This document shows positions 4,738 through 10,928 of a DNA stretch of 64,000 nucleotides, piece by piece. The notes beneath the pieces are model-generated. The model did no database searches. It saw only the letters and a list, made by a program, of their open reading frames with translations, and had not been told where the DNA came from. The stretch's first letter is position 1. Every line of letters starts with the position of its first letter. The DNA comes from Piromyces finnis finn. Taxonomy: Eukaryota; Fungi; Neocallimastigomycota. The DNA lies in the NCBI GenBank assembly GCA_002104945.1, contig MCFH01000002.1, forward strand, positions 496,001-560,000. Direction: 5' to 3'. The position numbers were made by a program, and so were the translations under genes.

Positions 4738-4915
4738 GGTATAACTATTTATATTATATTTCTATTAAAAAAAGTTTATATTATTTAATAGATATTCATA
4801 AAATGTTTTTTTTATTTTATCTATTTTTTTTATTATTTTTTTTGTGTTTTTTTTTTTTTTTGTTTTTTTTTTTTAATAAAAAAAAAAGAAAAAAAAATTA
4901 AATTATATATTATAT

Positions 4916-5132
4916 TATTAAGAGTTGTTTAATTTAGGTTTATAATTATGTCAACTTTATTAATATATTTTATGATAAAGAACTACTTGCGTTACATTCT
5001 TCTCAAACTACATGTATTTATACATTTACATTGTGGCTTAAACATATAATTAAATACAATATATACAAATACGTTTTAATACATTTCAATACATTTGAAT
5101 ACATGTGACATAACGTTTCACATATTCTAACA
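4916..5132 (-). repeat. 3' LTR (217 bp)
   Basis: On the minus strand it runs TGTTAGAATATG...CTCTTAATA. I found no difference from 9383-9599 by eye. Confidence 0.95.
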
Positions 5133-5144
5133 TTCCCCCTCAAA
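5133..5144 (-). other. Polypurine tract
   Basis: The minus strand reads TTTGAGGGGGAA immediately before the TG of the 3' LTR, a Copia-type PPT. Confidence 0.9.
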
Positions 5145-5504
5145 CCTAATTTTCTACTAAGTAAAATTTGGTTTGCTGGTGAATATGTGCATTTTATTAT
5201 TTCTAAACTATTAACTATAAACTAAATCTAATGTTTAAAATTTTTATATTTCATTAACTGGAATTTAAAATATTTCACAAATATTATTCACTAATTGCTT
5301 TAAAGAATTTAAATATTACCCTATAACTTCGTTTTTATGGATAAACTGAAAACCTTTGTATAATTGGGTAGTATTAAAGTTTAAAATTTGGATTGGATAT
5401 TCATAAATTGTTATACCATCCATTAAGGATTGAAAACCCTTCCGGTTTTACATTATCCTATAAACTATATTGGTAATCTCTCTGAGATTTACACAGAATT
5501 ATAG

Positions 5505-5739
5505 ACAACACATGGTTTATCTCTTTGATTTTACGTCCTTATGACAACGCATGGTTTACCTCTTTGGTTTTACGTTTTCTTAACAACTCATGGTTAACCT
5601 TTGATTTTACGTCCTTATGACAACACATATGGATAACTCTTTTTGGTTTTACGTTCTCTTAACAACCTATGGTTAATCTTCTTGGTTTTACGTTCTTCGG
5701 ACAACCTATGGATAACTCTCTGGTTTTATGTCCTTATAA
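5505..5739. repeat. About 39-bp degenerate tandem repeat, 6 units, inside the LTR element
   Basis: ACAAC-anchored units start at 5505, 5544, 5583, 5620, 5662 and 5701. The minus strand reads as decayed 13-aa units (e.g. IGCPKNVKPRRLT). Confidence 0.85.
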
Positions 5740-6125
5740 TTACAATTTTCTTTAGAATATTAGCATAATTGTATTTCAATCTATTTGTAAATACTAATTA
5801 ATAATGGTAAAATTTTAATTAAATCCTTAATAGTTATTTAGTATATGTATATTGAATTTTAACATTTTCTTTTAGGTGTTTTTCCTTCCTTTTATGCCTT
5901 TTGTATTGATTAATTATTCTTATAATATTTAAGAATATTTTACTTTGTATTTGAAATTTTGTTCTTTTCATTTTTACATATTGAATCTTATAAATTTTTA
6001 CAATTTGAATTTCAATTCATTCTATTTATTAAGCCTTAGTTTCTATGCAATGTTTTAGTTATTTCCAATGTTTAACTAGAAACAAAAATTATTATCTTGA
6101 ATTTTAAATTTTGTATATTCACTAC

Positions 6126-6593
6126 TTCCCCCTCAAATCTAGATGTTTAGTAATAAATACTTAGATTTGAAAAAGAGAAATTTAAATTTTATAAAATTTC
6201 ATTCATTTTGCATCAAATTTTCATAATAATGAATAATTTTCCATAACATATACGATAAGTATTAATACCTATATAAATAATAAATAACATATTCTAATGT
6301 TTTCATTCATTTTTCTCAATTGCTTATCCTTTAAAATATAGTGAAATAATATTTTCATGATAATATATTTTAATGTAGTGATAATCATAGAATATCAAAC
6401 TAATGAATAAAATATTCCTCAATTATGTATTTCTTTACTTCAAATTAAAATAAGTAGATATACCAGTAAAATTATAACAAGTTAATATTGTAAGATAATG
6501 ACATTTAAAATATCGATTGTTGAAGAGAATAAAGTTCTTCTAAATTATATCGAAGTCGGCTCGGTTAATTAGAATGTCAGCTAATTGGTCGGC
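6126..6593 (-). pseudogene. Decayed Copia RNase H C-terminus and a second internal PPT-like end
   Basis: Minus strand 6593-6570 encodes ADQLADIL, compared with the Copia RNase H motif DQLADILTKPL. A second TTTGAGGGGGAA lies at 6137-6126. The flanking frames are broken. Confidence 0.5.
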
Positions 6594-7696
6594 GATCACT
6601 CACTACGTTGAAAGTGGCGATTTATATATGAGGTTACTAAATCACCGTAAATTATATTTTAAAACGGCGTCACAACATTCTTGAATGTTGGTAATAAATA
6701 AATATGATGAATCAATGTCATCTAAATCTAAGGAGCCCTTACTATGAAGGTGCTACATTGTTATTGATGGGACCAAATTAAATATATATAGGTCTAAAAC
6801 CATCATTAATAATTATCTATGAATATAACTCATTTCACGCTAAGTTAAATCATGATAAGTTGATAAAATATTATTGAATATACCCATTTCACGCTAGGTT
6901 ATTCAAAGTATATATATATGTAGAATATGCTCATTTCACGCTAAGCATTTCTAACTTTAATAAATTACCTCATTTGAAATATTTGCTATGTATATTAGCA
7001 ATAACAGCCTACGGGATGAGCATTTGACCAGTAATATATTTGCTTTATAGGTAGCAATAATTTAAATAATGCTTTTGAGGCTAAATATTATCTTAAAGTA
7101 TTGTTATAATGATTTAATTCAAAGAGTAGTATACTGGATTAAATTATATAATACTGATTTGAGTGAAATTATCATAAAGAAATTGATTGACATTTTCACA
7201 AGGATAGTTTCAATGTTCATTGCATAATTTCATTACAATAGGGTATTTTATACAAACTTATCAAATAATGTTTAATTATTCTAATTCATGTTTCTAATTG
7301 TATAAATTTTATGTATTTTCTTTATGTTCTATCTTTCCTCTATGGCGGAAAGAATATTTTCTCATTAAAATAGTAGTAGTTAAAGTATTTGAATATTTCA
7401 CAAACAATTTATTTACTTGAAATAAATATGTATGCTATGCTTTCAATAACAATAATGCTATTTTATGAATGTTAATAAAACTAGTTCTTTTGAAAATAAG
7501 ATGAAATATTGGTAAATATATGTAATTATGTGTTCATGAATATTTGTGAATGGATATTTTAATAACTGGATATATGGATATTTAATGTTATTGTATGTAA
7601 ATTGACATAATGAGTAGATCAATATCAAGTTGAATAATCTTCATGCTATATAATAAACTTTATATCTTCCTAAATTATATTTTAACTATTTTCTTG

Positions 7697-8460
7697 TCAG
7701 AAGTGAGTTCTTTGACAAATAAATTTAACAACATCTATATATGGTCTTAATAGTTCTGGAACAATTAAAACATTTTCGGTTTGATAGTTTTCGAGAGTAC
7801 AGCAAAAGGTACGTCCGTTAGCACAAAGAGTACCGTTTAATAAGTGAACGTAGTTCTTAACATGGGAGTTCATCTTCTTAACACCAAACATGTTACCTAA
7901 GTTTCTAGATTGGTAATCAGTATAGTTACGACAACTATCTAATTCCTTGTATTCAGGTTGGAATGGAAAATAAGCTTAAAGATCGTGTTTCTTAGTAGCA
8001 GCATTGTTTATGACATCAGAAACAATGGCAATAACGTGATATGGAAGTTTAAGAGATTGGTAGAAATCTTCAGTAGTACTAATTAATTGTTCTAATTCTT
8101 CCCAGCTCTTTTCTGATTGACAAAAATGGATTGCTCAATCTTTTCGAATTAGTTAATGCTGGAAAAGACCCTAAGTATTTTTGCTGTGAGCACCAGCTTT
8201 CTTTTTGAAACAAATTGAATAACTAGTATCTCTGACTAATAATTACTTTTCTGGTTCACTGAACCATTTACCACCATAGAAAGTACTGATTGGTTGTTCA
8301 CTAACATTTTGGTTCTGGATCATCATTAACTTTAGAAACCATGTATAATTCTTCATCAATATCAGATAATTGAGCTGTCTTGGTCATAACATCACTCTTC
8401 ATAAGGAGTGGAATTAGAATCTTTCTGTAACCACGCTTCTTAAGGAAATATAAACCATAT
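7697..8460 (-). pseudogene. SES1: Captured, disabled fragment of cytosolic seryl-tRNA synthetase (class II catalytic domain, C-terminal portion)
   Basis: The minus strand gives YGLYFLKKRGY, KTAQLSDIDEELY, SEQPIS, CFKKKAGAH, FEKIEQ, FYQSLKLPYHV, NNAATKKHDL*AYFPFQPEYKELDSCRNYTDYQSR and HLLNGTLCANGRTFCCTLENYQT. These are SerRS motifs, interrupted by several stops and frameshifts. Confidence 0.92.
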
Positions 8461-9368
8461 AGGATTTCTAATTTCATCAGTGTTAAGATCCTTATCGGAG
8501 ATATTACATATTACAATTTTCAATATATATCATAATTGATAAATACTAATTTTCATAATTGTGTTCTCATATCCTTTCTTTAGATAATGGATGTAGAGAT
8601 CTTTATAAAATTTTGCTTTATTATAGAATTAATATGGAATGCTAGGAAATATTCTTTTTGTTACATAAATTTTAAAATTATCCTGATAAATAATCTAAGC
8701 TTAAGGAACTTATTTATTCAAATTTCACATATTATATTCTTAATATTAATACTACTATATCATATCTTCTTGAGAATAGAAGTTTTGTTACTATTGATAT
8801 TATGTCTATATTCAAGGAATATTAAATTTACTGAAAGCTTTTTGTAGTTTACTATTGACGATTTGTTTTAAGCTACAAAGTTATCAAATCAATATAGTGA
8901 TATAGGTATTGTTCCTTGGGGGTTTAAGCTATTTATTTATATTTAATTTGATTTGTATATTTTCTGAGTTTATTGAATTCAAAATAATTTAAATTTTAAT
9001 AATTTACTAGTTTTTCGGAAATTTAATGTTTGAATTCTATCATTGTAGATTAACTTATATCATATTAGAAAATATACTACTTTCTATGTTTTATTTATCA
9101 GATTGATTATTTCCTTATTTTCTATATTAAGTTACTTCGAATCTTTTATTTATGGCGAAAATAATATTTCAATCTTAAAATTTTGAAATCTCAAATTTTA
9201 GATCTCAAGATAATTTTATCAAACATAGAAAATTTCAGATTAAATAATTTAGTTCTGATAGTTAGAATTTCCTACAGTTTTCTTCTATGACAAAATGTCA
9301 TATCCGGCGGTTTGATTCATCTTTCAGAGAATCATTTGAGAATTAATGAGATTCTCTCTTGAGAGTCT

Positions 9369-9382
9369 TGAGACTCTTAATC
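9369..9382 (-). other. Primer-binding site complementary to the anticodon arm (nt 27-40) of tRNA-Lys(CUU)
   Basis: The minus strand reads GATTAAGAGTCTCA directly after the 5' LTR end. Its complement TGAGACTCTTAATC is the anticodon stem-loop of eukaryotic tRNA-Lys(CTT) as I recall it. There is no TGG-type PBS. Confidence 0.75.
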
Positions 9383-9599
9383 TATTAAGAGTTGTTTAAT
9401 TTAGGTTTATAATTATGTCAACTTTATTAATATATTTTATGATAAAGAACTACTTGCGTTACATTCTTCTCAAACTACATGTATTTATACATTTACATTG
9501 TGGCTTAAACATATAATTAAATACAATATATACAAATACGTTTTAATACATTTCAATACATTTGAATACATGTGACATAACGTTTCACATATTCTAACA
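9383..9599 (-). repeat. 5' LTR (217 bp)
   Basis: Direct repeat of 4916-5132. It is followed on the minus strand by the PBS and flanked outside by the TATAT TSD. Confidence 0.95.
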
Positions 9600-10928
9600 T
9601 ATATATTCATTATAGAAAAATGAATATATGAATATTGTATTCGACACGTGATTTGTATTTTGATCTAAAACGTATATAAATGTATAAATTGACTTTTTAT
9701 ACATTTATAATTTTTTAAATTAAAAAAAAAATTATTTTAGAAATTCTAAAATATGAAGAATAATGCTTTTTATAATTAGAAAGATAATTGATAATTTTTA
9801 TATAAATATAATATACATATATACGCTAGCATATTTTTTATAAATTATATATAGAAAGCATTTATAATTTATTGATATATAGAAAAGCATTTATATCTAT
9901 CACATCACATAACATTAACACAATTTAAAGAAATTCTATAACATAAATTCTATTTAGATTTTTTATTTAATTTTTAATCAATGATATAATGATAATGAAA
10001 TATGCAAGTTTTATTATTTTACAATAACAACAGATACTTAATTTCATTTAAAAATAAAAGTTGTATATTTAATTATGATTTTATTTTTTATTGAATGCTT
10101 TTAATTTAAAAGATATTATTAATAATAATTTTTATTATACTTGGGTTAGGAAATAATATAATGTTTAGTTGAAAATCTCTATAAAATCAGCCATATGTTA
10201 AAGCGATGTTTTAAATTTTAAATTAAAAAATTAGGTTTTTTCGTGGCTTGAAAAAAGTATATTAATATCACTTAAAAAATTAAAATTTTAATTTTTAAGT
10301 GATATTATACATATGTAGTTAATTAATTTAATATAACTTTATTTTTTTGTGTAATATATATAAAACTATAATATTTCTTTTGGTAATCTTAATACATAAT
10401 ATAATGTAATTAATAATATATAATAATAAAATCATAAAAATTCATTCGTTAGAATAAACGTTTTATATAAAATAACAATATAAAAAAAATATTATATATA
10501 TAATCATTTTATTAAATAATAAAACTTTTGAAAGTTTTAAAATTATTGTAAATTTTTAATATTCGAGGTTTTTTTTTATTTTCTCCTTTTTTTTCTTTAT
10601 ATTTTTATTAAAAAGAAAAAGTGGGAAATAATTAGTTTTTTTTTTTTTAATCATAATAACTAATCGACCTTAAAAAAAAACTCTTTTAATTCAATAAATT
10701 CAAAAAAAAAAAAAAACTTTATAAAATAAATTACCAATAATTTTTTACAAGAATTATAAAAGTATTATAATTTTTCATATTACGAAATAAAAATCTTTTC
10801 ACTTTTGTAAAAATATTACCTAAATTTTATAAAAAATTAAATATAAGATATTTAATCCTAATATAATATATAGTTTAATTAATATAGTATTTATCATTCA
10901 GATAAAAGTATAATAATTACAATAAATT

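Follow-up and report, generated by a model that had tools for sequence, protein, structure and literature searches.

Copia-type retrotransposons of the anaerobic gut fungus Piromyces finnis are probably primed by a 5′ half of tRNA-Lys(CUU)

We analyzed a 64,000-nucleotide stretch of the Piromyces finnis genome (hereafter the window; contig MCFH01000002.1, positions 496,001 to 560,000) and predict that it contains a recently active, non-autonomous Ty1/copia-type element that is in all probability primed by half of a tRNA-Lys and uses proteins supplied in trans. The primer would be a 5′ piece of the host tRNA-Lys(CUU) whose end, nt 40, lies on the 3′ side of the anticodon stem. Its nt 27-40 would anneal to the 14 nt that directly follow U5, and the annealed piece would be extended into U5, priming minus-strand strong-stop DNA. 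The proteins would come from autonomous copia elements of the same genome that have the identical site.

Window positions 9369-9382 read TGAGACTCTTAATC on the + strand. The element is oriented on the minus strand, where its primer-binding site (PBS) reads GATTAAGAGTCTCA. Even with one mismatch allowed, the 14-mer has no second match in the window, and no match occurs in any of 100 dinucleotide shuffles. The next base on the + strand, 9383, is the first of a 217-bp repeat (9383-9599) that is 100% identical to a second 217-bp copy at 4916-5132. The original prediction described a PBS that lacks the usual TGG and lies directly at the end of the LTR, and both points hold. There is no gap between PBS and LTR, and the site at 9369-9382 has no TGG start, the complement of the CCA end that characterizes the canonical class primed by tRNA 3′ ends.

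The element has the hallmarks of LTR retrotransposons (TG..CA LTRs, a 5-bp duplication and a polypurine tract), with the exception that the LTR of the window copy ends in TA instead of CA; family copy L045 ends in CA. Read along the minus strand, it begins with the 5′ LTR (TGTTAGAATATG...CAACTCTTAATA, 9383-9599), preceded by the target-site duplication TATAT (9600-9604), and continues with the PBS (9369-9382), a leader that aligns with those of other members of its non-autonomous family (9166-9368), and a variable cargo module (7638-9165) that includes a C-terminal fragment of a seryl-tRNA synthetase (SerRS; 7697-7891). The conserved non-coding 3′ internal region of the family (5142-7637, 96-98% identity to L034, L035, L036 and L045) is followed by the polypurine tract GAGGGGGAA (5133-5141), which is directly upstream of the 3′ LTR (4916-5132), and by the second TATAT (4911-4915). 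The interior contains no open reading frame longer than 86 aa, and the element is non-autonomous. It was recently active, based on its identical LTRs and target duplications. Tracts similar to its polypurine tract occur in the autonomous elements L038, L039, L043 and L044. At its ends (TGTTAGAA...TTAATA) the LTR is similar to that of the autonomous L043 family, which, as a guess, may be its helper.

The genome to which the window belongs (G000, 56.5 Mb in 232 contigs) was searched by pattern and has a tRNA-Lys(CTT) gene at G000:C227:117727-117800 (L033:1486-1558, minus strand). ARAGORN identifies it as tRNA-Lys with anticodon ctt, the Rfam tRNA model scores 66.4 bits against a threshold of 29, and a T run lies 3′ of the gene. 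Its nt 27-40 are TGAGACTCTTAATC, with CTT at 34-36, so the host's own gene bears out, at 14 of 14 positions, the proposed identity of the PBS complement with nt 27-40 of tRNA-Lys(CTT). This segment extends from the 5′ strand of the anticodon stem through the loop to the second base of the 3′ strand. The tRNA has G at nt 26 and the element has A where C would pair; because this A faces G26, complementarity stops at nt 27. A BLAST search of the genome with the whole tRNA matched only the one gene, and therefore no element carries a longer copy of the tRNA. The 56-Mb assembly yielded one tRNA-Lys(CTT) gene, a count that is a lower bound, and given this single detected gene the proposed primer may be a minor tRNA. 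The gene lies about 35 nt from a contig end. Wobble variants of the 14-mer number three with TTT and one with ATT, versus 166 with CTT, which suggests that use of tRNA-Lys(UUU) is marginal at most.

The 14-mer occurs 166 times in the genome and its reversed control not at all; with up to two mismatches the counts are 519 and 169. Among 30 sampled loci, none of the excised 14-mer places is a tRNA gene, and the 14-mer adjoins at least nine different LTR ends, most of them ending in CA on the element strand. The constancy of the 14-mer among these copies is partly by construction, as the 14-mer was the search key, and the independent evidence is the cross-match from a protein-based search described below. 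Nine elements were mapped with both LTRs. In all nine the 14-mer follows the 5′ LTR with zero gap and a purine tract precedes the 3′ LTR. Eight have matching 5-bp target duplications, and LTR identity is 100% in seven and 99.5% and 98.6% in the others.

Autonomous elements with the same PBS encode copia-type polyproteins. L038 and L039 have single open reading frames of 1677 and 1822 aa, with Pfam domains in the order copia-type gag, Pol_BBD, integrase, SH3_retrovirus and RVT_2; L043 and L044 are of the same copia type, with broken frames. The protease-integrase region of L038, used as a query, matched 99 places in the genome, 60 of which could be checked for the site, being on contigs with listed 14-mer places. 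At 51 of these 60 loci the exact 14-mer is found on the correct strand, 727-1359 nt upstream. These loci span 31-100% protein identity to L038 and include lineages at 31-36%. The PBS is conserved across the family and in the autonomous partners, which the original prediction had named as a check. The remaining nine loci have no exact site within the expected range; for three the 14-mer lies 7-8 kb upstream, and at one of these a nested gypsy element with 606-bp LTRs accounts for the distance.

We considered whether gypsy elements also use the Lys site and rejected this, as the gypsy pol near the site in L041/L047 and the element in L049 are nested insertions with LTRs of their own. The elements at L047:604-6905 and L049:1508-7720 are of gypsy type, with 606-607-bp LTRs that are 99.8% identical, and sit inside copia copies, shortly past the PBS or within the open reading frame. 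Two L038-like copies (L012:1003-1500 and L017:1515-2036) begin 87 and 111 nt downstream of genes for tRNA-Arg(TCT) and tRNA-Ser(TGA), each in the same orientation as the neighboring tRNA gene. These two cases may point to a preference for integrating close to Pol III genes.

The position of the site bears on a reading in which the 14-mer has a function other than priming, in packaging, in dimerization, or as a target or decoy of tRNA-Lys small RNAs, and the true primer binds elsewhere. Fragments of tRNAs complementary to the PBS are known to silence LTR elements in mammals, and the evidence for priming by tRNA-Lys comes here from sequence. Against this, the site always begins at the first base after the LTR, where regeneration of the LTR requires a primer site, and no TGG-type or other tRNA-3′-end site is present at the place of the PBS. 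A site that served only silencing would also not persist in every active lineage. We regard this reading as very unlikely.

The last 10 nt of U5 in the window element (9383-9392, minus strand) contain ACTCTTAAT, equal to nt 31-39 of tRNA-Lys, and form an inverted repeat with the neighboring PBS. Within the LTR family of the window this raises the possibility of self-priming, Tf1-like or from a hairpin site, in which the element's own RNA supplies the primer through its U5 end ACUCUUAAU in place of a tRNA. Palindromic hairpins do replace the PBS in fungal GalEa elements (Donnart 2017, PMC5445492). However, the LTRs of the autonomous L038, L039, L043 and L044 contain no stretch of at least 7 nt that could pair with the site, although these elements have the identical 14-mer; the PBS complementarity to the element's own 5′ RNA that defines the self-priming class is therefore absent from the LTRs of all four autonomous families. 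The predicted U5/PBS hairpin is weak and no better than those of shuffled sequences (z -1.6), and we rejected it as a functional structure, since it is weak and limited to the LTR family of the window. A primer drawn from bases adjoining the PBS would leave almost no U5 template, and the exact 14/14 match to the host tRNA would be a coincidence. Self-priming is thus extremely improbable.

Priming by half a tRNA-Lys would require that the tRNA is cut, and we infer both the cleavage and its position after nt 40. The cut could instead fall after nt 41, as the last A of the LTR could pair with U41. The sequence is silent on who cuts the tRNA, and a review of Ty3 attributes the cut of the Ty5 tRNA to host activity. 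The primer may then be an ordinary 5′ tRNA-Lys half or tRNA fragment produced by a stress nuclease of the host, independently of the element, instead of a tRNA cleaved within the particle or by a dedicated activity. Classical tRNA halves are generally known to end within the anticodon loop, between nt 33 and 38, and so short of nt 40, and we consider this origin of the primer unlikely; it would be a variant of priming by half a tRNA-Lys rather than an alternative to it.

In eukaryotic tRNAs G26 is usually m2,2G. During plus-strand strong-stop synthesis the primer would be recopied from nt 40 back to nt 27, before m2,2G26. On the retroviral model, the block common to elements of the Lys group and of the initiator-Met (iMet) group described below may be exactly 14 nt long because recopying stops before this modified base. 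The site may likewise be identical to the tRNA in lineages down to 31% protein identity because the primer is recopied. A bipartite PBS is not indicated: for 11 elements, the duplex predicted between tRNA nt 1-26 and 150 nt of leader is no better than with shuffles.

Both the type of primer and the use of tRNA-Lys as a primer are already on record. Half-tRNA priming is a defining trait of the genus Hemivirus (ICTV profile, PMC8515867), and in Drosophila copia and yeast Ty5 a 5′ fragment of tRNA-iMet primes (Kikuchi 1986 and Ke 1999, as reported in PMC10886601). Like hemiviruses, the elements described here have a PBS that directly follows the 5′ LTR and is complementary to an internal tRNA segment. 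As in copia and Ty5, the PBS adjoins the LTR and would pair with the anticodon stem-loop of a tRNA, apparently in the register nt 27-40. Unlike copia and Ty5, the tRNA is Lys(CUU) and not initiator Met, and elements of the Lys type form their own deep group in a reverse transcriptase tree.

Other Copia elements are also primed by halves of non-initiator tRNAs. Tca2 of Candida albicans and related LTR families have a PBS matching an internal part of tRNA-Arg(UCU), and Candida families also use iMet (PMC4139406); Tca2 is, like the present elements, a fungal Copia using an internal part of a non-initiator tRNA, although a different one. In plants, half tRNA-Met and, in Bianca, half tRNA-Ile are used, in Copia only (Neumann 2019, PMC6317226). 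In Puccinia, fungal Copia elements and the Helenus elements that depend on them are primed through the anticodon loops of tRNA-Tyr, Ile, Asp, Asn and iMet (Kojima 2024, PMC10886601), and Lys is not among the anticodon-loop primers given there. The Puccinia elements and Bianca show that Copia elements can be primed by halves of tRNAs other than iMet and have often switched primers. They also parallel the present case in that non-autonomous partners have the same PBS as the autonomous Copia they depend on.

The closest precedent is the FunCo1 copia clade, for which Donnart et al. (2017, BMC Genomics 18:410, PMC5445492) gave the PBS ATTAAGAGTCT and noted an internal match to tRNA-Lys. This 11-mer is contained in the 14-mer of the window, and both groups are fungal members of the Copia superfamily. 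The comparison with FunCo1 uses its published PBS and description only. FunCo1 is almost restricted to Pezizomycotina and absent outside Ascomycota (same source), whereas the present elements are in the AT-rich genome of an anaerobic gut fungus. Its site was given as 11 nt and compared with a Drosophila tRNA; here the site is 14 nt and matches the host's own. The original prediction regarded the choice of primer as one not known to be described in anaerobic gut fungi. An internal tRNA-Lys site as such had already been reported for FunCo1, and our search of the literature on gut-fungal retrotransposons and on the motif found no description of such priming for anaerobic gut fungi, so that part of the expectation may stand.

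Outside this genome, relatives of the L038 reverse transcriptase at 51-61% identity are present in assemblies from JGI, ENA and NCBI as well as in a set of Orpinomyces proteins. All three contigs long enough to read (L061, L063 and L064, 23-28% G+C) have an LTR end in CA followed by GATTAAGAGTCTCA. The next relatives, L059, L060 and L062, at about 40% identity and on contigs with 38-41% G+C, have LTRs ending in AATA followed by GGTTATGGGCCCAG (L059:2900-2915, L060:2890-2905, L062:2891-2906); exactly 14 nt are common to them, after which the sequences diverge. We take GGTTATGGGCCCAG to be the copia PBS, the complement of tRNA-iMet nt 27-40 as judged by the metazoan initiator tRNA, from which the host tRNA may differ. 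The original prediction also held that the Lys site uses the same register as copia-type half-iMet priming. The 14-nt block at the same place in these three elements, which probably corresponds to iMet nt 27-40, agrees with this. A relative from the basidiomycete Bondarzewia (L065:591-606) has an LTR ending in ACA and then GATTATGAGACC, which complements a CAT anticodon loop ending at position 40, in the same register. Half-tRNA priming thus appears to be more widely distributed than the choice of Lys.

A maximum-likelihood tree of 19 reverse transcriptase rows (P0009/L061 was left out, having no BLASTP alignment to cut by) places all verified Lys-site elements on one side of a branch with 100/100 support. 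This side has two deep subgroups and includes the Orpinomyces protein. The backbone among the remaining rows is unresolved, in a tree built without named hemivirus references. No ascomycete protein is among the 120 best matches of either of two protein searches, and an Atlas search likewise returned no ascomycete relatives. A tentative reading, which we hold to be possible but doubtful, is that practically all Copia elements of anaerobic gut fungi belong to a single old clade, in which a change of half-tRNA primer from Met/iMet to Lys(CUU) took place independently of the ascomycete FunCo1 clade, and that the limits of the block at nt 40 and 27 reflect the cleavage site and the first modification that blocks reverse transcriptase (m2,2G26). 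If true, the length of the PBS would report on how tRNAs are modified and cut in an organism for which few genetic tools exist.

Members of the window's non-autonomous family have in common the 217-bp LTR, a short leader and a non-coding 3′ region of ~2.7 kb. The elements align over a stretch that begins with the LTR and reaches element position 333-435, about 115-220 nt past the LTR, with 88-92% identity. A module of about 1.5 kb differs between members, and the one in the window (7638-9165) is absent from L034, L035 and L036. Its cargo fragment matches SerRS structures with an E value of 1.9e-14, and the module has at least 11 copies in the genome at 97-100% identity. The SerRS cargo matches the host locus G000:C1:662516-663663 in four pieces, and gaps of roughly 90-160 nt between the pieces, presumably introns, occur only in the host locus, which suggests that the cargo was captured from a spliced mRNA.

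Other members carry other cargo. An open reading frame of 405 aa with a Phage_lysozyme domain is found at L035:6038-7252 and L036:1109-2320, and a third type, an open reading frame of 436 aa for which a Pfam search gave no match, at L034:1109-2416. Cargo modules are thus interchangeable within the 217-bp-LTR family. Assembled contigs of public runs, aligned to window positions 4800-9700, show the family to be present in four studies. One assembled contig (run X1) joins window 9303-9388 to 4922-6136, giving the order leader, PBS, LTR and 3′ internal region; such an order would fit a one-LTR circle or a tandem copy, but equally a repeat that collapsed in assembly.

The half-tRNA-Lys reading appears well supported by sequence, and its presence in anaerobic gut fungi, apparently as the rule, may be new. 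It would extend the tRNA-Lys(CUU) half-primer from FunCo1 of the Pezizomycotina, where it was mentioned in passing, to a fungal phylum that diverged early. Across lineages whose protease-integrase regions differ by up to about 70%, the 14-nt site has stayed identical and matches one host tRNA. With nearly all of its Copia apparently using this one primer, the genome is an unusually clear case of half-tRNA priming that does not depend on the initiator tRNA. PBS finders based on tRNA 3′ ends are expected to miss such elements. For gut-fungal genomes, CA followed by GATTAAGAGTCTCA provides an annotation signature that would detect both copia elements and their non-autonomous, gene-carrying derivatives.
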